Shown here: piece by piece, positions 1-15,240 of the stretch
Layout: each line of letters starts with the position of its first letter
Numbering within the stretch: the stretch's first letter is position 1
Assembly: GCF_947568905.1 (NCBI RefSeq)
Contig: NC_079167.1
Coordinates: 68,944,001-69,008,000 of the forward strand
Reading direction: 5' to 3'
From: Ostrea edulis
Taxonomy: Eukaryota
Length of the DNA: 64,000 nucleotides
Position numbers and translations under genes: made by a program
Notes under the pieces: generated by a model
Told to the model about the DNA's origin: nothing
Seen by the model: the letters and a program-made list of their open reading frames with translations, nothing else
Database searches by the model: none

Positions 1-32
1 TATAACATTAAAGTCACTTGGTTGATACTCAC

Positions 33-439
33 CCGTGAACGCTATGCAGTATTTGGAGTTCTTGATCAGGTTAGCTATGTGCTCTGCCTCTCGCTGGACT
101 TTGTCGTAAGAGTTGTGGATTTCCGCCGTTTTGATCGCCTCCTTCACCATTTCTTTTTCCTCCTTGGTTAGGTTCGATTCCTGGGATTTATACGAGCTTT
201 TTAAAGCAAACCAGCAGTCTTCGTGAAAAGTCGCAAATCCGTTATCGTCCCAGTTCACGTGGAAACCTAAGGAGACCAAGTTTCAACAAGATGATGTCAT
301 GTCGTATATTTTAGTGAGTGCATGTGAATACAAAAATTACTATGCACTCTGACAGTACACTGGCTTTCCTCACAATGTTATAGCATCATCACTTCGTCTG
401 TTCGCTGTCACTGTTACATCGGATTAAAGATAATTGATC

Positions 440-479
<40 letters not shown>

Positions 480-717
480 AATATACTTTATTGCTCATTG
501 CTCAGTAAAGAGAATTTTAAAATAGCCATCCTTATGAACTCAGACCGAATGGTCAAATAAAACTATGACTGGTAACTATAATCTAACCTGAGCGTTTCCC
601 TTTGGGTACGATGAAGGCCCTGACATCCACCCGTCCGTCTGTCTGCCTGATTAGACATTTATCACACGCCACTACGGCACATTTCTTCTCCCGAGCATCG
701 TCTGTACCCGTCGCCAT
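33..717 (-). CDS. Class IV (SIRT6/7-like) sirtuin copy A, partial: exons 1-2, gene continues beyond the left edge
   Basis: Exon 1 717..588 (MATGTDDAREKKCAVVACDKC...KRSG, donor G|GTTAG). Exon 2 266..33 (GFHVNWDD...FHEDCW...CIAFTG, acceptor TTAG, donor G|GTGAG). About 97% aa identical to copy B exons 1-2; ends at the FTG that precedes the sirtuin GAGIST motif. Confidence 0.85.
444..475. repeat. (CT)n microsatellite in copy A intron 1; shorter homologue near 6654-6685
   Basis: Direct reading. Confidence 0.9.
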
Positions 718-1204
718 TGCGAGTTCGTTTATTGATTTTTCCCGTATTGACTGATTTTTAAAGTTCTTGGGGGTAAAACCACGAGTGTGTTTGTTGTTAT
801 TTTGGTTACGACGACCAGTCGATCCTTGTGATGACGCAAATTGGTAAAAATAGAAATGGAAATTCATTTAAAGGTATGAGTAGTTAAGCTTACAGGTATG
901 TTGACCAAGTAAACGTCAAAAATACTTTGATGACACACATTATACAAGAAAGACGACTGCCTCCTTGTATGTGTAAGGTTTATAAGGAAGCATTTGAGTA
1001 CTAATGATTTCATGTTTTAATTATTTTAAAATTTACTTGATAAAAACGAATTATTCTTCTTGAAAGAAATGATATCGGTTATCATTATTGCTATGATCAT
1101 AAGTTAAACAGAACATGAAAAGTCTTGCATTTCTCTTAAAAAGTGTATAAAAACAGGTCTGTTCATCAGTTTTTGCATGTTTAGTAACTTTGCTATTCAA
1201 CTAC

Positions 1205-1334
1205 NNNNNNNNNNNNNNNNNNNNNNNNNNNNNNNNNNNNNNNNNNNNNNNNNNNNNNNNNNNNNNNNNNNNNNNNNNNNNNNNNNNNNNNNNNNNNNNN
1301 NNNNNNNNNNNNNNNNNNNNNNNNNNNNNNNNNN
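1205..1334. other. Assembly gap (N run) at the position homologous to the 20-bp minisatellite at 8111-8937
   Basis: Left side belongs to the block matching 7300-7980; right side ATACCGTGTGGAAA matches about 8945 onward. Confidence 0.9.
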
Positions 1335-3039
1335 ATACCGTGTGGAAACGTTTAATTGGCGTAGAGAACCTTCCTTACGATATCTTTCTGTCATCGAATA
1401 TCGTTCCTTTCTATGGGATATTTACAATGTTCTAGTATTTTGTCAGTGTTCCTTTCTATAATTAGATATAGACATAAGGAATAAATGTTTAGCTTAGGAG
1501 TAGGAAAATGCATATTCATACTTTGAAACAAGACTTCCCCTTATCCATGTAAGTAATAATTTACTAATTAGAGATATATAGAGACATGTGTATTATTGTT
1601 TAATGTTTTCACAAATAAATTCTGTATGATAAACTCTATGCTATAATGTGTTCAATCAAATTAAACCCGAATGTTAGAGTTATATACCTAACCATAAAAG
1701 TGTCTTTATAATTACCTACACAAACGTGTTGAAAAAATAAAGGGGGAAAATAAAGAAACCTGTCCGATCAACTCCAACAGTAAAACTCTACATAATGTAT
1801 ATACTACATGTAAAAGCTTGATCGAATTTATCACATTGTTTAAAACAATCCTGAGTTTATTCCTCGATTTGTTGGGGGGGGGGGGTGGAGGTTAAAAATT
1901 TGGGCCTATGATCGGCGCTTACGGCTTTTGAGCAGGGAGGGATCTTTATCTTGCCACACTTCTTGCATATATAGTATATATCTGACTTTCTGTAGAGGGT
2001 GATGAGAACTGTTCCACTGGCTAATTCAAAAAGTTGAGGGATCTAATTTTCCCATTGAATTAAAACTGTCTACTGCTTTAATTTTCGCGGCTTCTTGTCT
2101 AAATCTATCTTCACGCACTTTGAATTCACGGCTTCGTGCCCATTGTAAATGTTGTGTCTTTTCCATACTGACTGCAGTTTTGATTTCACACTTTTTGTTT
2201 TTCCGTGAAAATCAAACTGCGGTGAAAATAAGGCTGACTATTGTACATCATCAGTTAACAAGGATTCCGTTTTCTCATTTGTTACAAATATCATTAACAT
2301 CGTTATTTTACGGATCGTTGGAAACTTCAAAAGTAATGAGGTACCATTGTTACATTGTTAAAGTAAAGATGTATAGTAATTATTTCAAGTAAACATAATA
2401 CAACATATGTCTTTCATATAATTTTAATATCAAAATCAACAATTACCATTATACTGAAAACATTGTACACTGAGTATTTAGGACATTCACATGTTGTGTG
2501 GCAAATTTTCGCCTCTTTTGCATAACTTGTACATGTATGTACCTCAACTGATTTTCTCTATATAAAAGTTACTGTCCATTTCCCTGAAAATGCACTATAT
2601 TCACCACTCTGCAAAATCAGTGCTCATCCCTTGCACAATTCCCGAGTCTATCGCGATATTTTTAACCAATACAAATACTCGCCGTCTCAAGAAATAACTA
2701 TTTTGTTACGGGGGGGGGGGGGGGTGCTATTTTCCTCATACATATTCTATAACTGTATTTTACATCTCTATATATAATTTTTATTTAAAAATTTCTGACA
2801 AGATAACCGAGACACAAATACGATATCTGAAGATATCTTATACAAGTGCAATTTTCTAAAATCCAAAGGTCCCTAATAACAGTAGGACATTGTCTCATTT
2901 TTCACTACACTTAGTGAGTCAAAGGTTCTGGTCAGTGAGCAAAAAAAGCAAACAAACAAAAACATGCATATCGTTCAACAAGATCTCATCGGTCCTCATC
3001 AAATGACGTGGAAATTTAAGACATGTACATGTTAGAAAT

Positions 3040-6000
3040 CTACAATTTGCGATTCAAATCGTAAGTGACTAGTCTCTCTTCACGCCTTGCTTCCCAATCT
3101 TGCAGTTCCTCTTCCGAAAGCATATGTCTCATAATATGTGACATCAATTTATCACAGTTGCCAAACACGCGGGAACCTAGCATAGACCTTTCATCCTCCT
3201 CCATCTTACAACAAACGGCGTCAAAGGAGGTGCTTTGTCTGAAAGGAAATGCAGTATTTTCATTCATATGTCGATTCAATATATCCCAGTAACACAGAAT
3301 CTTCGATATCTGCTTTGTACATAGATATTTTATTGAACATAGATCGATGTTAAAGGCAAACGAACAACTCAACTTTATTACAAACGGGATCACTTCAGTT
3401 TCTCCATCGTCAACTTCCCATTTCTATGTAGCAATATTCCATTATCACTTGCATATGGTGTTTATGTCTCTCGACTATTTCAATACACAAAGAGTTCGTT
3501 CTGCGTATGATCAGTCATTAAATAGAATCGGGTTTTTGACATACAAGTAATTGTTAGGTCGTTCTTTACACACTGATTTTGACTACAGATTACTCCATTT
3601 ACCTGATCAAAATATAAGGCTCATGGTGAATGTGACTTGTTCAACAGGGGATGCTTACTCTTTCTAGGCACCTGATCCCACCTTTGGTACATGTATGTCC
3701 AGGGGTTCGTGTATGCCCAACTGTTAATTTTATTTTCTTTATAGGAGTTATGAGATTGATACTGTTCGTAATCTTCATCTTTTCAGTACATGTATACATA
3801 TTGCAGTTAAATTTATAAACATTTTAGATATTGGTTGTTTTACATTTACATCAATCATGGTTATGTATATTACTATAGTATATTATTACGCTGCAACAGC
3901 AATTTAGTAAACAGTTTGGTGTTACCTGCAGATATACCTGCAGCTATGTCAAATTCGTTGTTTCAATTAAATTTCCCCAGAACCTATCACACTTTTATCA
4001 TACAGATGTGTATTTTAGAAAATTGTATCCAAGTATGCACCTGTTACAAATAACCAGGCGGGTTGGTCTTTTTCCCATTTCCACCAGACAGTTCGCTGGG
4101 TAGACTTGAAGGGTGGATCCAAGAGCTATGACGAGATCCGCCTGTCCGGCGTGGTGTATTGCATTTCGTAGTACATCTTCCTCCAAATAATCTCCAAAGT
4201 TGATGATTGTGTTCATCAGATAGCCTCTACATTTCTGAAGAAAAAAAACCATAATGCACCGCTACATTATGATTAAAATCAGATCTTTGATCCGCTCCGT
4301 TATTGTTAAAATACAGCGACGTAACAATAACAGATCAGATCAAATATCTTATCTAAATAAGATTGTTTACGTGTATATACCATCTTCAATATATGTCATA
4401 TGCATTATGTATTTCACTTGCATTATTTGACAAAACATGTAATAACACCCATGAACGGTTCTCAGTAAAAGATAGTCAATTGTAAATCGAAAAGCTCCCA
4501 AAGCATAATTTTAAGTGAGTATAATTAACTATATATTAGACATACAAAACGACTTTTGAATGTTATGTAATGGTCAACAACAATTATACTGAAATGTCGT
4601 AGTTTAATGGCTACTACGAATGTTACACATTTTCTGGAGTATTGGTTAGCAACATCAAAGACTAGCGCGGTTTAATATATATTATTTTCTCCCTCAGTGC
4701 CCTCGTCCGAAAATAAATATTTTCTTGACTATTTGATAATAACATATAACAGAAAAAGTGAATAGGTTGGTTGCGTTCGTTACAAGATCGCTTTTAATAA
4801 ACAAACATCAAATCAACAAAGCTGAAAAATCACTAATGAAAGCATATGAATTCAAAACTGAAAATGGGCTGGGTGGGAGGAAAGGCTAAGAAATACAAAA
4901 GCGACCTTTGTTGCTTGTAACGAACCTCGCACTGCCCGAAAACTGACCAGTAGGCGCAAAAGCGCTCGTGCATTCATGAGCTCAAAAACCCGCGAAATGT
5001 ATTTACGGAAAATAACAAAAAATGACGAAATGTAAAACGTAAAGAAATAAATGTACCGCGTCTATGTATACACGAAATTATAAAACATACCGGGTGAAAG
5101 CATTTGACCCAATGATAGGTTGTAATTTCATGTCAAACTAGATTGTTATAAAGACCATAGAATTTGCAAAATGCTGACTATGAACGGGACTGTCGAATAA
5201 TTCCTAGGCTGACGAATTATAACTCACCTTATCGTTACAGACACGCCCAGTTCGATGATTTATCCGGCATTGCTTACACATGATCACAGGAACATTGGTA
5301 GCTTTACCCCCACAACCGAAATTTCTCATGTATCTTTTCTTACACTTTTCACATTTCTCTATAAATGTGTTGCCATGCAGTTCTGAGATTTGACCTTCCT
5401 CAAGCCCAGAGAGACGGTGCAGCCCATCAACATTTTGACTGATCACGTGCTTCAAATCTCCGTTATCCATTAGTTTTACTATCGCTTCGTGGGTGTAAGT
5501 TGGTCGGAGCCTTTGAAAGTTGAGTGTAACCTGCTTGGATTTCCCTTTGGTCTCTGACAAATATAGGTAATTCATATATTACTAAGGATGTGGTCACAAA
5601 TATTCTGCTGTCTTATAAGTTGATTTTACATTGTTATATATGATTGTAAGAAGTACTTAAGCCTTTACGTAACAGGCAGGCACGTTGCTTAGTTTTTCAA
5701 AGTGGATAGGGCAGGAAAAACATTTAAAAACGACCCCTCCTTTTCATTTTTTCTGCGTTCCACAATTTGGTTCTTCTGATCTCCAATCTAATCAAAATCA
5801 AACTTCTTAGATCCGCGCCGTATACCTTGCGTAAGAAGCGATTGTGAGCGTATCCTAGGATCTGATTTTAATTAGATTGTTATGATCTCATGATAAGTAT
5901 TTTAAAAATGTAAATGAATAAGAAACAAAACGTGGGATAACGATATAGAATGTGATTCAGTGTACCCACAGGCAGACAATATTCATTTCACCGGTACTTT

Positions 6001-6651
6001 GATAAGTACCTTGCTTCTTATCTTTATCCCTCTCAGTCCATTTCCCCCGAATTCCTCGGTAATCTCCGATTCCTGCTGCGGTGGAAATACCCGCTCCTGC
6101 GTATGATAAAAACCAAGTTATGGATTTCTTTATTAGTAACTATGCTTAAAAGTTTTCTTTTCTCATTAAAATAAAGTATAATCCTCTTAATTTTGTGTAC
6201 ATTTAGAATGTAATAGTGCAGGAGAATACTATAACACTTGATTGATACTAACCCGTGATCGCTATGCAGTATTTGGAGTTCTTGATCAGGTTAGCTATGT
6301 GCTCTGCCTCTCGCTGGACTTTGTCGTAAGAGTTGTGGATTTCCGCCGTTTTGATCGCCTCCTTCACCATTTCTTTTTCCTCCTTGGTTAGGTTCGATTC
6401 CTGGGATTTATACGAGCTTTTTAAATCAAACCAGCAGTCTTCGTGAAAAGTCGCAAATCCGTTATCGTCCCAGTTCACGTGGAAACCTAAGGAGACCAAT
6501 TTTCAGCAAGATAGTGTCATGTCGTATAGTTTAGTTGGTGTGAATACAAATATTACCATGCACTATGACAGTAGACTGGCTTTCCTCATAATATGTTATA
6601 GCATCACCAAGTCATCTGTTCGCTGTCTCAGTTACATCAGATTTAAGATAA

Positions 6652-6683
<32 letters not shown>

Positions 6684-7517
6684 ATCAAATATACGTATTA
6701 ACTATACTACATTTTAACACCAAAAACATAACACTAACATACATTGCCTGACAGCCAGCCGTGACTGCTGGACGCCCGTAATTTATTGTATTCTAAATAC
6801 ACAATTCGCAGAAAAACAAGGCGTTTTCCCATGTACAAAAATTAAGATAACCTTCCAACTCCATATACAAAATATGAGCAATACATAAATATCAATACTT
6901 TTAAATATACCTCAAATCCCCTCTATATAGCATCAGGGCCGGCCAGGAAAAAACTAGAAATAAAACGATGAAAATCGCAAAAAACTCTAGAAAACCTGTG
7001 TCCGTTGCCAAGTGCCGCTGGATGCAGGGGTTTGTGAACGGACCTCACAACTTATTTGTAAATGTTTAACTTTTGCATGGCATGGATGAAAACATAAGAT
7101 TTAATTATCCATTAAGTTTCGTCTATCTCGTGACGAACGGCGGCTAGAAGTGTATTCTGAATTGCAGCTCGAAAACCTGTTTTTCTAACTCACATTCTAT
7201 TGGCTAAAAATGGATCATTCCAAACTACCTGTACAATATACTGTACCGTCAATACAACATTTTCCCGCTATTACTAACGAAACGCGGGAAAATATGATTT
7301 ATTGCTCAGTAAGGGGATTTTAAAATAGCCATCCTAATGAACTCAGACCAAATCGAATACAACTACGACTGGTAACTATAATCTAACCTGAGCGTTTCCC
7401 TTTGGGTACGATGAAGGCCCTGACATCCACCCGTCCGTCTGTCTGGCTGATTAGACATTTATCACACGCCACTACCGCACATTTTTTCTCCCGAGCATCA
7501 TCTCTACCCGTCGCCAT
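3040..7517 (-). CDS. Class IV (SIRT6/7-like) NAD-dependent deacylase copy B, 6 exons, 389 aa, N-terminal CCHC module
   Basis: Exons 7517..7388, 6486..6253, 6096..6010, 5553..5228, 4234..4041, 3238..3040; all GT-AG with consistent phases (1170 nt). Motifs GAGISTAAGIGDYRG, RPTYTHEA, SQNVDGLH, ELHGN (catalytic His), CEKC...HRTGRVC...C, GSTLQV, CNR, RVFGNCDKLM. Confidence 0.92.
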
Positions 7518-8110
7518 TGCGAGTTCGTTTATTGATTTCTGTCTTTAAAGTTCTTGGGGGTAAAACCACGAGTGTGTTTGTTGTTATTTGGTAACGACGG
7601 CCAGTCGATCCTTGTGGTGACGCAAATTGGTAAAAATAGAAATGGAAATTCATTTAAAGGTATGAGTAGTTAAGCTTACAGGTATGCTGACCAAGTAAAC
7701 GTCAAAAATACTTTGATGACACACATTATACAAGAAAGACGACTGCCTTCTTGTATGTGTAAGGCTTATAAGGAAGCATTTGAGTACTAATAATTTCATG
7801 TTTTAATTATTTTAAAATTTACTAGCTAAAAACGAATTATTCTTCTTGAAAGAAATGATATCGGTTATCAGAATGATTATTGCCATGATCATAAGCTAAA
7901 CAGAACATGAAAAGTCTTACAGTTCTCCTAAAAAGTGTATTAAACTGGTCTGTTCATCAGGTTTTGTACAGAAACTTTGCTATTCAACCACATGGTCATA
8001 TTAGTCACCACCACTCCCCCAACAGAAATTCTTCAATTCTTTTTTATAATTTTTTTTTTTATTATTTTTTTTTTTAGAAAATCCAAACCGTGTAGAAACG
8101 TTTAGTTGGT

Positions 8111-8937
8111 GTAGAGAACCTCCCTTACGAGTAGAGAACCTCCCTTAGGAGTAGAGAACCCCCTTAGGAGTAGAGAACTCGTCTTAGGAGTAGAGAACCT
8201 CCCTTAGGAATAGAGAATCTCTCTCAGGAGTTGAGAACCTCCCTTAGGAGTAGAGACACCCCCCTTAGAAGTAGAGAATTTCCTTTAGGAGTAGAGAACC
8301 TCCCTTAGGAATAGAGAACATCCCTTAGGAGTAGAGAACCTCCCTTAGGAGTAAAGAACCTCTCTTAGGAATAGGGACCCCCTTAGGAGTAGAGAACCTC
8401 CCTTAGGAGTAGATAACTTCACTTAGGAGTAGATAATCTCCCTTAGGAGTAGAGAACCTGTAGAGAACCTCCCTTAGGAGGAGAGAACCTCCCTTAGGAG
8501 TAAAGAACCTCTCTTAGGAATAGGGACCCCCCTTAGGAGTAGAGAACCTCCCTTAGGAGTAGATAACTTCACTTCGGAGTAGATAACTTCCCTTAGGAAT
8601 AGAGAACCTCCCTTAGGAGTAGAGAACTCCCCTTAGGAGTAGAGAACCTTCCTTAAGAGTAGAGAACCCCCATTAGGAGTAGAGAACCTTCCTTAGGAAT
8701 AGAGAACTCCCCTTAGGAGTAGAGATCCCCCCTTAGGAGTAGAGAACTCCTCTTAGGGGTAGAGAACCTCCCTTAGGAATAGAGAACCTCCATCAGGAGT
8801 TGAGAACCTCCCTTAGGAGTAGAGAACCCCCTTAGGAGTAGAGAACCTCGCTTAGGAGTAGAGAACCTCCCTTAGGAGTAGAGAACCTCCCCTAGGAGTA
8901 GAGAACCCCCTTATGAGTAGAAAATTCCCCTTAGGAG
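8111..8937. repeat. 20-bp minisatellite GTAGAGAACCTCCCTTAGGA, about 41 copies
   Basis: Head-to-tail degenerate units with no unique spacers. Confidence 0.95.
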
Positions 8938-10707
8938 AAAATCCATACCGTGTGGAAATGTTTAAGGCGTAGAAAACTTCCCTTAGGATATCTTTCTGTC
9001 ATCGAATATCGCTCTTTTCTATGGTGTATTTACAATGTTCTAGTATTTTGTCAGTGTTTCTTTCTATAATTAGATATAGACACAAGGAATAATTGCTTAG
9101 CTTGGGTGTAGGACAGTGCATATTCATACTTTAAAACAATAGTTCCCCTTCTACATGTATGTAATAATTTACAAATTATAGATACATGTATAGTATTGTT
9201 TAATGTTTTCACAAATAAATTTTGCATTATAAACTCTATGCTATAACATGTTCAATCAAATTAGGGCCAAATTTTAATATTTTATTTCTAACTACCCCTG
9301 TACATGTACCATAAAAGTGTCTTTATAATTACCTACACAAACGTGTTGAAAAAATAAAGGGGGGGGGGGGTTTAAAGAAACCTGTCCGATCAGCTCCAAA
9401 AGTAAAACTTTAAATAATGTATATATTCATGTAAAAGCTTGATCGAATTGATCACATTGTTTGAAACAATCCCGAGTTTATTAACTCGCTCCTAGCGTTG
9501 ATTTGTTGGGGGGGAGGGGGTAAAAATGTGGGTCTATGATCGGCGCTTACGGCTTTTGAGCAGGGAGGGATCTTTATCTTGCCACACTTCTTGCCTATAC
9601 ATGTATAGTACACGTATATATCTGACTTTTTGTAGAGGGTGATGAGAACTGTTCCACTGGCTAATTCAAAAGGTTGAGGGATCCAATTTTCCCATTGAAT
9701 TAAAACTGTCTACAGCTTTAATTTTCGCAGCTTCTTGTCTAAATCTATCTTCACGCACTTTGAATTCACGGCTTCGTGCCCATTGTAAATGTTGTGTCTT
9801 TTCCATATTGACTGCAGTTTTGATTTCACTTTTTGTTTTTCCGTCAAAATCAAACTGCGGTGAAAAGAAGGCTGACTATTGTACATCATCACAGTTAACA
9901 AGGATTCCATTTTCTCATTTGTTACAAATATCATTAACATCGTTATTTTACGGATCGTTGGAAACTTCAAAAGTAATGAGGTACCATTGTTACATTGTTA
10001 AAGTAAAGGTGTATAGTAATTATTTCAAGTAAACATGATACAACATATGTCTTTCATATAATTTTAATATCAAAATCAACAATTACCATTATACTGAAAA
10101 CATTGTACACTGTGAGTATTTAGGATATGCACTTGTTATGTGGCAAATTTTCGCCTCTTTTGCATAACTTGTACATGTATATACCTCAACTGATTTTTCT
10201 CTATATAAAAGTTACTGTCCATTTCCTTGAAAATCCACTATATTCACCACTCTGCAAAATCAGTGCTCATCCCTGGGACAACTCCGAGTCTATCGTGATA
10301 TTTTTAACCAATCAAATTGCTCGCTGTCTCAAGAAATAACCACTTTATTAGGGATGGGGGTGGGGGTATTTGCTATTTTCCTCATACACATTCTATAACT
10401 GTATTTTACATCACTAAATATAATTATTTTAGATAAAAAAATTCCAAGATAACCGATACACAAATAAGATACAATGTATCTGAAAATATTTTGTACAAGT
10501 GCAATTTTCTAAAATCCAAAGGTCCACAATACCAGTAGGGCATTGTTTCATTACTCACTACACTAAGCGAGACAATGAACTTTGAATAACGTAAATATAT
10601 AAGTTCTAGTCAGTGAGCAGAAAACAAACAACAAAACATATCTTTTTCAACATTAATTGATTCTCTTGAAATGACGTAGAAATTTAAGACATGTACATGT
10701 TAGAAAT

Positions 10708-13700
10708 CTACAATTTGCGTTTCAGATCGTAGGTGACTAGTCTCTCTTCACGCCGTCCTTCCCAATCTTGCAGTTCCTCTTTCGAAAGCATATGTCTCAT
10801 AATATCTGACATCAATTTATCACAGTCGCCAAACACGCGGGACCCTAGCATAGACCTTCCATCCTCCTCCATGTCACAACAGACGGCGTCATAGGGGGTG
10901 CCTTGTCTGAAAGGAAATGCAGTATTTTCATCAATATGTCGATTCAATATATCCAAGTGCCACAGAGTCTTCCATATCTGCTTTGTACATAGATATTTGA
11001 TTGAACATAGATGTTAAAGGCAAACGAAACTTTAATACAAACGGGATGACTTCAGCTTCTCCATCGTCAACTTCCCATATTTATGTAGCAATATTCCATT
11101 ATCACCTGCATATGGTGGTTATATCTCTCAACTATTTCAATACGCAAGAGTTCGTTCTGCGTATGATCAGTTTTAAAATCGAATCGGGCTACTGACGTAC
11201 AAGTAGATGTTACAGGGGTTTCAACAGTTTCGTTTAAGGTAATTCCACTAAGTTCAATTTTATATTTTATTATTGATTCTTCAAATAATACATCTTAGTA
11301 AGAAAAGGTGAAGATAACGAACAGTGATCGATCTCGATCATAACTCCTATAAGCAATAATAAAAGTGATAAAGTTAGTATGTTGCGGTTTTAATAATTTT
11401 TCATCAATTAGCACACATATATCTTTATCAATGTCAGAAAATTGCAATTTTCTTTAAACAGCATTACCAAAATTTCATAAAAAATTGTTAAAACAATATA
11501 ATAGTATTTATAACAATTTCATGAAACTGTTTCTTTAAAAAAAAAAAAATACAAACTGTTTGTGAAAAATAAAGGAAATCTATCGAATAATGGACTTGAT
11601 AAAGGATTCAATGAAAACAGAGTTATTGCCTTTGGATTCAATATTTTCAAACATATAATTGATTATTCAAATATAACTAAAACTTTTGAAATATTTCATG
11701 GTTAACAAGATTTTTAAAAATAACTATTGAAAAAGACTCCAACAAAATTTATGTTCCTGTCATGCATAAATCTTAATAAATCATTGACTTTGCAAAATCT
11801 TATGACGTCACAGGAGGGTGGAAATACGTTAAAGTCAGCATTTCGCAAAACTTTTATGGTCGTTATAACGATCTAGTTTGCCAATACAACCTGTAATTGG
11901 GTCAACTACTGTCTGACGTGTTTAATACCAATAGTTAGGTCGTTCTTTATACACTGATTTTTTACTACTACGGATTACTCCATTTATCTGATCAAATAGA
12001 GGGCTAATGGCGGATGCTTACTCTTCCTAGGCACCTGATCCCACCTCTGGTATGTCCAGGGGTCCGTGTTTGCCCAACTCTTAATTTTGTTTTCTTTCTA
12101 GGAGTTATGAGGTTGATCACTGATCTTTATCTTCACCTTTTCAGTATACAGATTGCAATTAAATTTAAAGACAGTTTAGATATTGGTTGTTTTAAATTTA
12201 CAACAATCATGGGTATGTAATATTATATTATTACGCTGCAACGGCAACTTGGTAAACAGTTTGGTGAAGAAATACCTGCAGCTATGTCAAATTCGAATTT
12301 GTTTCAATTAAATTTCTCCAGTAACCTATCACACTTTTATCATACAGATGTATATTTTAGAAATGCACCTGTTACAAATAACTAGACGGGTTGGTTTTTC
12401 CCCCATTTCCACCAAAGAGTTCGCTGGGGAGACTTGAAGTGTGGATCCAAGAGTTATGACGAGATCCGCCCGTTCTGCGTGGTGGACTGCGTTCCCTAGT
12501 ACATCTTCCTCCAAGTAATCTCCGAAGTTGATGATTGTGTTCATCAGATACCCTCCACATTTCTGGAAAAAACACAATGCACCGGTACACTCTGGTTTAA
12601 ATCAGATCTTTGATCCGCTCCGTTATTGTTAAAGTGCAGCGACATAACAATAACGGAGCGGATCAAATGTCTTATTTCAATCAGTTTGCGCACGTGTGTA
12701 TATACCATCTTTAATATATCTCATTTACATAATTAATGTATTTCATCTGCATTGACAAAACATGTAACAACACCCACGAACAGTTGTCATGAAAGGATCA
12801 TCAATTGTAAATCGAAAAGCTCCCAAAGCATCATTTTAAGTGAGCGTAAACAACTATATCTTAGCTATGCAAAACGACTTTTTGAATGTTATGTAATGGC
12901 CAACAACAAATAAACTAGAATGTCGTAGATTAATGTCTACAACGAATGTTACACATTTTGTGGAGTATTCGCAAGCAACATCAAAGACTAGCGCGGTTTA
13001 ATTAATAGTGCCGTACATATAGACGTAATGACAAAACCCACCTGGTTCATGCACACGCCCCCGGTTCGGTGATTTATGTGGCACCGCTCGCACACTTTGG
13101 GAGGAACAGAGGTAGACTGTGCCTTACATCTGGTATTCTTCTCATAACGTTTGCCGCATTTTTCGCATTTCTCCAAAAATGCATTACCGTGTAGTTCAGA
13201 TATCATGGATTCTTGTATTCCGGAAAGTCTGTGCAAGCCGTCTGTGTTTTGACTGATGACATATTTGATATATCCCAGCTCCACTAGTTTTAACAAGGCC
13301 TCGTGTGTGTACGTAGGACGTAAGTCTGCAAGTCTGTAGCCTCCTTTTTTAGATAAACCCCTTTGACCTGTTAAGTTGAAAAATATGCATATGAGGAACT
13401 ATTTTATCAGTATTTAAAAAAAGGGGGAGGGACACACATACATAAAGATTGCTCCATGGTTAATGAAATATCAACGAAGTTGAAGTACTATACGTCATTT
13501 ACGTTAGACCTTTTGAAATATACTCTTTCAAACATCAAAGTGAAAATGACACAAACTTTCTGAAGATTTCAGTGTACCGTATTGTTTGACTTTGTCTTGC
13601 GTGGTCCATTTGCCGTGAATTCCTCGAAAGTCCCCAATTCCGGCCGCTGTTGATATTCCAGCACCTTCATAAAAGTTAGTGTGTGGTAATCACATTATTG

Positions 13701-15240
13701 TTTCATTGTTCTTTGAAAATAAATTTAGAGCCTTTAACAAAACTTAACCCGAACATGTTTTTAAAAAAACCACAGTCATAAAAAAATAGCTGTGAATTCT
13801 GTGGAAGTTTTCCCCACCCCCCTTGAGAGGCTTCCCGCCCTCGGCAGTTTCCGGGCCACAATGCATATGTGTCCGGACCTTTAACTAAGAAGAATTGATT
13901 TATCATACCAGTGAAGGCGATGCAATAGTTAGATTTTTTGATGAGTTGAGCAATTCGTTCGCCCTCCTCCTTGATCTTTTTTAAGGAATGGTGAGTTTCT
14001 GCAGTTTTAGCGGCTTCGCGTATCATGTCTTTCTCCATTTCCGGCAGAACTACGATGATGCTGGATGGGCTTTTCGCACAGGCCGATCTCCACAGAGAAT
14101 TCCAACAGTCGATATGGAACATGGCCATTCCATTTTCATCCCACTTGACTTTGAATCCTAGTAAGTGTAAAGTTTGTTACAATTTAGTGAGTCACTTCAG
14201 TCTCGCCTTGTCCATCAGACTATATACAGGAATAGTCTTTTAAATTCCTTTCTTTTGATGAAGTTTCACGGTTAGAGTACAATTTAATGGCATAATTAAT
14301 AGGCAAATACCCTCAAGTGATGAAGCTTCATGTTTGCTCAAATCATTACCCCCAGGGACCAGGTTCGTCTCACCCCCCCCCCCCCCCGGCGGGAGGGGGG
14401 AGGGGGGCACAATTAAAATTTAAAGTTTTACATAAAGAATGTAGGGTTGAATAAACCTTCTACGAGCAATATGGGTTTCAGTTTGTCAAATAAGTATGAA
14501 AGCATCCTCATGAACTTCTGGGACCAATGAGATGGAGTCAAGTAAGTGTAAAATTGATTATCAATTTATTCATTCAATTCATTTATTGATAACCATAATA
14601 GGTGTAAAATGTAAAAATCTCCATGTCGGGTATATACCTTTTTTACTCTGGAGCCAGAGTGGGTCCACTACAGGGGTTTAAAGATTCCCATTCTCTAAGT
14701 GTCTCAACATATACATGTACATGCATCAACAATAACTGTCTTGACCCCGAACCCAAACCTGCGGGAGGGCAGGGATATTTCAGGTAAAGTCAACAGAAGG
14801 ACTGAATGTTAGATCTATTTTTTTTTTTTAATGATACAATCATCTACAAAGCAAGAGATCGAAATTAAATTCCAATATTTGAACACACTTTAATTTGATT
14901 TATAAATATTGATATCATACCTATGCTACGGATATGAAAAGTACCTTCTGTGTTTCTCACTCTATTCTAGATTTCTGTTGATAAGTTTAATCGTTGTACT
15001 GACAACCCCCAGCAATGGGCCCAAGTAGTTTTGGTTTGATCTAATTAATACATACATATCTAAAGTTTTCTTTTTCGTTATAAGGAAATATCAAATTCAA
15101 ACTAGATAGATCAATATACCTTTCTGTTCACATTTATCTACGCAGTATGCTCTTACATCCGTCCGCCCGTCTGTAATCAAAAGTGGATCCCTTTTGCATT
15201 CAATGAAACAACAATGCCCCATTACGTCTTTGCTTGCCAT
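10708..15240 (-). CDS. Class IV (SIRT6/7-like) NAD-dependent deacylase copy C, 6 exons, 391 aa, N-terminal CCHC module
   Basis: Exons 15240..15120 (MASKDVMGHCCFIECK..., ACCATGG start), 14157..13909, 13664..13578, 13367..13042, 12562..12369, 10906..10708 (1176 nt). Exons 3-6 have the same lengths as in copy B (87/326/194/199). Motifs GAGISTAAGIGDFRG, SQNTDGLH, ELHGN. Confidence 0.92.
12010..12142 (+). mobile_element. Dispersed repeat fragment (GGATGCTTACTC...CACCTGATCCCACC...GGAGTTATGAG)
   Basis: Also at about 3625-3785 (+) and, reversed, at about 11300-11360 and 43780-43880; class not determined. Confidence 0.6.

Follow-up and report, generated by a model that had tools for sequence, protein, structure and literature searches.

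The question raised by this locus is whether three sirtuin genes, which lie in tandem on the minus strand within the first 15.2 kb of a 64-kb stretch of the Ostrea edulis genome (contig NC_079167.1, positions 68,944,001 to 69,008,000; the whole stretch is called the window below) and each begin with a small finger-like module ahead of the sirtuin core, represent an undescribed sirtuin system, as the original prediction from the sequence alone had proposed. In this study, we propose that the three genes, A, B and C, are paralogues of SIR9, a class IV sirtuin family that has already been named, and that they combine an apparently intact core with a family-wide zinc finger which would have a targeting rather than a catalytic role, a joint reading to which we assign a probability of about 80%. 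The three genes thus appear to be new members of a known family, and what is apparently new is that the finger has been recognised, together with a derived bivalve clade to which the oyster genes belong.

Three tandem genes and their first two exons

The models of A, B and C were assembled manually from three-frame translation and splice signals, all modelled introns being GT-AG, and local tblastn found no further sirtuin copies in the window beyond these three. The genes and the exon parts that encode the two halves of the finger are as follows.

10708..15240, minus strand: gene C, six exons (15240-15120, 14157-13909, 13664-13578, 13367-13042, 12562-12369, 10906-10708), 391 amino acids, SIR9-type class IV sirtuin
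15120..15240, minus strand: exon 1 of C, first half of the finger with C10, C15 and the TDGRTDVRA strand
14102..14157, minus strand: initial part of exon 2 of C, second half of the finger with W, G and FH-x2-CW, including H55 and C58
3040..7517, minus strand: gene B, six exons (7517-7388, 6486-6253, 6096-6010, 5553-5228, 4234-4041, 3238-3040), 389 amino acids, a mosaic with an A-like 5' end and a C-like 3' end
7388..7517, minus strand: exon 1 of B, first half of the finger with C13 and C18
6431..6486, minus strand: initial part of exon 2 of B, second half of the finger with H58 and C61
33..717, minus strand: gene A, with exon 1 (717-588) and exon 2 (266-33) in the window and the remainder past the window edge
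588..717, minus strand: exon 1 of A, first half of the finger, differing from B at 2 of 44 residues
211..266, minus strand: initial part of exon 2 of A, second half of the finger

These models reproduce exactly the lengths of 389 and 391 amino acids and the positions C13, C18, H58 and C61 in B that the original prediction had given, the equivalents in C being C10, C15, H55 and C58, and its estimate of about 57% identity between B and C in exon 4 agrees with the 55-60% measured here (47% in the module, 65% overall). A module of about 60 amino acids with the pattern C-x4-C...H-x2-C, divided in all three genes between exon 1 and exon 2, was likewise confirmed, both by the gene models and by the match to a foreign profile. 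This profile (A3, 71 positions), built from 74 foreign proteins and no window sequence, matched the spliced N-termini of A, B and C with E values of 1e-18, 4e-18 and 3e-15, respectively, covering positions 2-69 of 71, and the finger is complete only after exon 1 has been joined to exon 2. The junction is formed in all three genes by a phase-1 intron one codon upstream of an F-x-V-x-W motif; an NCBI-annotated gene of Argopecten irradians has its exon 1/2 intron at the identical place and in the same phase, and the positions of its remaining four introns match as well, going by the exon spans in tblastn. Comparison of the module between B and C gave a nonsynonymous divergence (dN) of 0.51 and a saturated synonymous divergence (dS), with dN/dS about 0.18. 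Finger and core are furthermore encoded in one frame in relatives of 430-460 amino acids on contigs of 1.5-1.9 kb, which are too short for introns, and in intronless genes among the relatives. A, B and C are putatively expressed.

The intronless relatives P0034 and P0121 are found on metagenome contigs, which include a 122-kb ENA contig. P0034 adjoins a NUDIX gene on the opposite strand, and P0121 is very divergent, has an odd composition and is perhaps of protist origin.

Downstream of the module, the Pfam family Sir2 (PF02146) was matched by exon 4 with 53.5 and 50.4 bits and by exon 5 with 26.5 and 26.2 bits (cut-off 24), and B and C keep the GAGIS loop that binds nicotinamide adenine dinucleotide (NAD+), QN.DGLH, the ELHGN motif with the catalytic histidine, and four zinc cysteines. 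In a phmmer search of PDB, the exon 4 peptide matched SIRT6 at 1.7e-18 and SIRT7 at 8e-14, and no other class better than 7e-8. P0030 of Argopecten, the closest full-length relative (52-57% identical to B and C), was modelled by AlphaFold2 with a mean predicted local distance difference test score (pLDDT) of 84.8 and a predicted template modelling score (pTM) of 0.85, and the best superposition of the model in Foldseek was with human SIRT6 (E 6e-24, about 35% identity over about 273 residues). The assignment to class IV made in the original prediction is thus supported by similarity of both sequence and structure, SIRT6 being the best match both ways, and the cores of A, B and C would be NAD+-dependent lysine deacylases or ADP-ribosyltransferases that are apparently intact.

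The catalytic histidine and the four zinc cysteines of human SIRT6 align with those of the family of B and C, but SIRT6 has nothing equivalent to the first 109 or so residues of the scallop relative, which bears out the earlier statement that human SIRT6 lacks the module, there being no N-terminal finger in it. SIRT6 differs in addition by another C-terminal tail and by its GIPDFRG loop: throughout the family the NAD+ loop reads GIGD[FY]RG, versus GIPDFRG in other sirtuins, the change from proline to glycine being nearly invariant in a 39-sequence alignment, and in the oyster genes it is carried by exon 3 of B (6096-6010) and of C (13664-13578).

The zinc module of the core has its own peculiarity. 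Besides the four cysteines aligned with SIRT6, C252, H256 and C262 (P0030 numbering) are invariant in the family, giving the pattern C-x2-C-x3-H-x5-C-x4-C within residues 222-267 of P0030, which correspond to exon 4 of B (5553-5228) and of C (13367-13042). These extra residues may form a second or rearranged metal site.

Membership of SIR9 and placement of the oyster genes

The breadth of the family was assessed with two profiles. An exon 2 profile searched against 1.84 billion representatives gave 129 matches, all of them sirtuin N-termini except for a few repetitive bacterial surface proteins, and a full-length profile gave 609 matches at E 1e-10 or better, among which the named ones come from many bivalves, gastropods, a chiton, Capitella teleta and the sponges Amphimedon, Dysidea and Oopsacas. 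Database labels of family members read 'Sirt6-like' or 'SRT1-like'. SIR8 and SIR9 were introduced as class IV families by Gold and Sinclair 2022 (Mol Biol Evol, PMC9486876), the latter with an insertion of about 25 residues and with members in choanoflagellates, ctenophores, sponges, cnidarians, Capitella and molluscs; the taxon spread found here (sponges, an annelid, gastropods and bivalves) agrees with it. The motif given for Capitella ELU05314.1 in Fig. S4 of that paper is found letter for letter in P0201, and that of Elysia in P0058, and both of these SIR9-defining proteins carry the finger. The presence of the finger in both reference proteins means that the architecture belongs to a described orthologue group, so that the proposal of an undescribed sirtuin subfamily or system is not supported. 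The related proposal of a distinct, locally expanded subfamily survives in part: the tandem array seems to be lineage-specific, but the finger is no local invention, 110 of 119 relatives carrying it.

On the other hand, the finger itself seems never to have been described as a family-wide feature. The analysis of Gold and Sinclair (PMC9486876) was based on extracted SIR2 domains and PfamScan, and neither 'zinc' nor 'N-terminal' occurs in its text. In the literature searched the name SIR9 was found in that paper only, and a literature search for an N-terminal zinc finger in sirtuins returned nothing relevant. A paper on scallop sirtuins (PMC12102419) gives four copies the names 'SIRT6-1..4' and makes no reference to zinc. 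SIR8 offers a parallel, as a class IV sirtuin of early animals that also carries an additional domain ahead of its core, but that domain is CAP-C (PF08603) and occurs in about half of the SIR8 sequences examined by Gold and Sinclair (PMC9486876), whereas the finger of SIR9 is nearly universal.

A maximum-likelihood tree of 47 family members, which was built without a SIRT6, SIRT7 or SIR8 outgroup and in which deep forks are not resolved, placed B and C as sisters (Shimodaira-Hasegawa-like approximate likelihood ratio test, SH-aLRT, 93), within a clade (SH-aLRT 100) that also holds two scallop paralogue groups of 393-395 and 425-431 amino acids and sits on a long branch. This clade stands among bona fide SIR9 proteins and is separate from that of canonical mollusc SIR9, which also contains a scallop gene. 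The signature insertion is complete in the canonical relatives; in B and C the part FYV.DD....Y.EE is gone and the C-terminal part ..P....C..C..HRTG is retained. The basic tail that follows the finger helix is also missing from B, C and their scallop relatives, the 14 residues after the helix having a mean net charge of +3.4 in the family, versus 0 in B, +2 in C and -3 in one scallop copy. By a criterion of our own, B and C have four features in common with the reference proteins of Capitella and Elysia: the finger, the C-terminal tail RVFGDCD...W.....R...YD, the GIGD loop and the extra cysteine and histidine residues of the zinc module. Thus, while the oyster genes fail as SIR9 by the published motif, they belong to it by these four features, and we regard them as a derived offshoot of the family.

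The finger, its predicted fold and its possible roles

Conservation of the finger was examined in an alignment of 74 sequences less than 55% identical to one another, with a mean column identity of 30%. Five columns (C, C, W, H and C) are invariant and four more (E, G, A and W) nearly so, and the consensus is C-x-L-K-x-C ... R-V-E-V-K ... V-x-W-x3-G-E-A-x-F-H-x2-C-W, with a minority of C-x2-C knuckles. A near-complete finger was found in the 110 relatives mentioned above, the 119 examined being those of at least 330 amino acids; eight of the remaining nine begin inside or after the finger and one is broken by a long insert. The carriers include molluscs, Capitella, sponges and protist-like sequences.

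Modelled alone by AlphaFold2, the finger (pLDDT 87.9, pTM 0.74) consists of short hairpins followed by a helix that begins at the histidine: C5 and C10 are part of an extended, non-helical stretch at the N-terminus, ahead of the first hairpin, and H49 and C52 are found where helix 50-65 begins. The pLDDT of the finger is 85-96 in the full-length model. No relative was recognised by profile, since Pfam gave no finger match at E up to 1 on 17 contiguous N-termini and only sub-threshold noise (Fer2_4, aRib, Prok-RING_1, Zn_ribbon_9) on single exons and contiguous N-termini, and a profile of the finger alignment had one chance match among PDB sequences (E 0.7). Foldseek of the finger against PDB returned nothing below E 4. 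In the ESM Atlas the sole close shape was the family's own cluster (TM score 0.79), and a feature search for the finger outside Sir2 clusters gave no usable match; a word search with the finger region of P0135 was uninformative, finding only P0135 itself among 8 candidates. The weak structural neighbours are generic treble clefs (RING, ZAD, ClpX ZBD, HNH and ribosomal L24e), which resemble the finger in the zinc knuckle and in having ligands at the start of a helix. The finger is therefore confidently predicted, at the level of the model, to be a treble-clef-like zinc finger without a specific known relative. Of the treble-clef or PARP-type finger suggested in the original prediction, the treble-clef arrangement is also predicted by AlphaFold2, but no specific likeness to solved structures, including PARP fingers, was found.

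The finger has a Cys-x4-Cys knuckle, followed by short beta hairpins and by a helix that opens with His-x2-Cys, and two predicted helices lead from it into the N-terminal segment typical of class IV and the Rossmann fold. We propose that it would hold one structural zinc. It would aim the enzyme at a substrate, a partner, or nucleic acid or chromatin, rather than join in catalysis. In canonical SIR9 the finger helix continues into an Arg/Lys-rich tail, and in the clade of the oyster and scallop genes this basic tail and part of the signature insertion have been lost, which probably shifted targets or localisation in that clade. A bolder version, which we offer only tentatively and consider rather doubtful, is that the finger constitutes an undescribed zinc-finger family, that it arose together with SIR9, no later than the first animals, and is confined to SIR9, that it provides a mode of targeting to nucleic acid, chromatin or a specific partner which is absent from SIRT6 and SIRT7, and that this mode was rewired in the bivalve clade of the window by loss of the basic tail.

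Several observations weigh against reading the genes as SIR9 paralogues with a targeting finger. B and C lack 13-15 residues of the SIR9 signature insertion, an absence shared with the scallop forms of 393-431 amino acids, and the tree, having no SIRT6, SIRT7 or SIR8 outgroup, is not proof of nesting within SIR9. Two possibly-RNA runs contain exon 2 words at 0.24-0.28, versus 0.17 for the whole 3-kb stretch, and look more like DNA of a relative than like transcripts. The structural neighbours of the finger give no functional lead, and the ESM Atlas model of a family member aligns over residues 87-393 only and so does not corroborate where the finger lies with respect to the core.

This last point bears on the alternative that survives best, although we hold it to be unlikely, namely that the finger acts mainly within the molecule, docking on the core and tuning access of NAD+ or substrate as a form of autoregulation. 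The full-length pTM of 0.85, together with a high pLDDT through the finger and both linker helices, hints at a docked finger, and the finger is immediately followed by the N-terminal segment of class IV (AE[FIY]H.S, which corresponds to the N-terminal extension in SIRT6); however, the ESM model, which is independent, superposes beyond the finger only and does not reproduce the docking pose, and docking therefore stays a rival of the targeting role.

The targeting reading further supposes a metal site, and on the model the finger putatively binds one zinc ion. It is improbable that the four residues bind no metal and that they belong to a small beta-rich domain stabilised in another way or to a set of redox-active cysteines, as might be suggested by the extra cysteine of B (C21) and by the members with C-x2-C instead of C-x4-C. 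The C, C, H and C positions are invariant in the 74 sequences in spite of a mean column identity of 30%, a knuckle combined with ligands at the N-terminus of a helix is typical of treble clefs, and the protein is intracellular, where structural disulfides are unlikely.

Equally poor are the prospects of the view that the module is a PARP-type (zf-PARP) finger which detects broken DNA and brings the sirtuin to sites of damage or activates it there. The PARP-type finger (PF00645), as in PARP-1 Zn1 and Zn2 and in DNA ligase III, has the same C-C-H-C ligand order and similar aromatic residues around H-x2-C, and PARP-1 fingers occur among the weak structural matches; but the score against the Zn1/Zn2 fold is weak and non-specific, no hidden Markov model match was obtained, and the spacing of the SIR9 finger is longer. 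A zf-PARP assignment was rejected by profile, with no match at E up to 1 in the 17 contiguous modules and up to 10 in the exon pieces, and by spacing, the SIR9 finger having usually C-x4-C and about 36-39 residues to the histidine in the window and scallop copies, and more in some relatives, versus C-x2-C-x28-30-H-x2-C in zf-PARP. Finally, it is scarcely credible that exons 1 and 2 have been wrongly attached to these genes and that the true proteins begin near the Rossmann fold, like the few database relatives that begin after the finger, in view of the end-to-end match of the joined exons to a foreign profile, the identical intron position and phase in the Argopecten gene, the one-frame finger and core on 1.5-1.9 kb contigs and in intronless genes, and the module dN/dS of 0.18.

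History of the array and meaning for the family

Two further features lie between the genes.

1205..1334, no strand: assembly gap (N run), intergenic between the 3' end of B (stop at 3040) and the ATG of A (717), unfilled
8111..8937, no strand: 20-bp minisatellite, 42 copies with 82% matches, between genes C and B and paralogous in position to the gap

The flanks of the gap are colinear with the C-B intergenic region, 497-1201 with 7301-7988 at 91% identity and 1335-3556 with 8945-11212 at 87% identity. The gap, with the stop of B on one side and the ATG of A on the other, is therefore intergenic and touches no exon or reading frame. It probably spans a repeat similar to the 20-bp minisatellite, whose presence at the paralogous place probably explains why the assembly breaks here.

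Each duplicated block begins in intron 4 of one gene, takes in its exons 5-6 and the intergenic region, and reaches as far as exon 2 of the following gene (15-4676 versus 6235-13002), and the nucleotide similarity between units ends in intron 4 (4676 and 13002). Exons 1-2 of A and B differ by a dS of only 0.04 and exons 5-6 of B and C by a dS of 0.23, while dS is saturated between the 5' halves of B and C, and B is therefore a mosaic. The closest gene of Argopecten irradians (CM084264.1) has a matching six-exon structure, with an intron 1 of about 180 bp versus about 900-960 bp in the oyster genes, and no second sirtuin gene was found within 10 kb on either side of it; the tandem array thus seems specific to the lineage of the window.

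For the window itself the result is modest, adding three more paralogues to a known family. For annotation it means that the mollusc, annelid and sponge 'Sirt6-like' genes of this family are not SIRT6 orthologues, and the finger explains why domain scans report 'Sir2' alone. As a mark of the family the finger also outperforms the published insertion motif, part of which has been lost in the clade of the oyster genes. SIR9 is one of two class IV sirtuin families of the first animals and was lost in vertebrates, and to our knowledge nothing is known of its function; a near-universal and strictly conserved finger provides a concrete handle on it.

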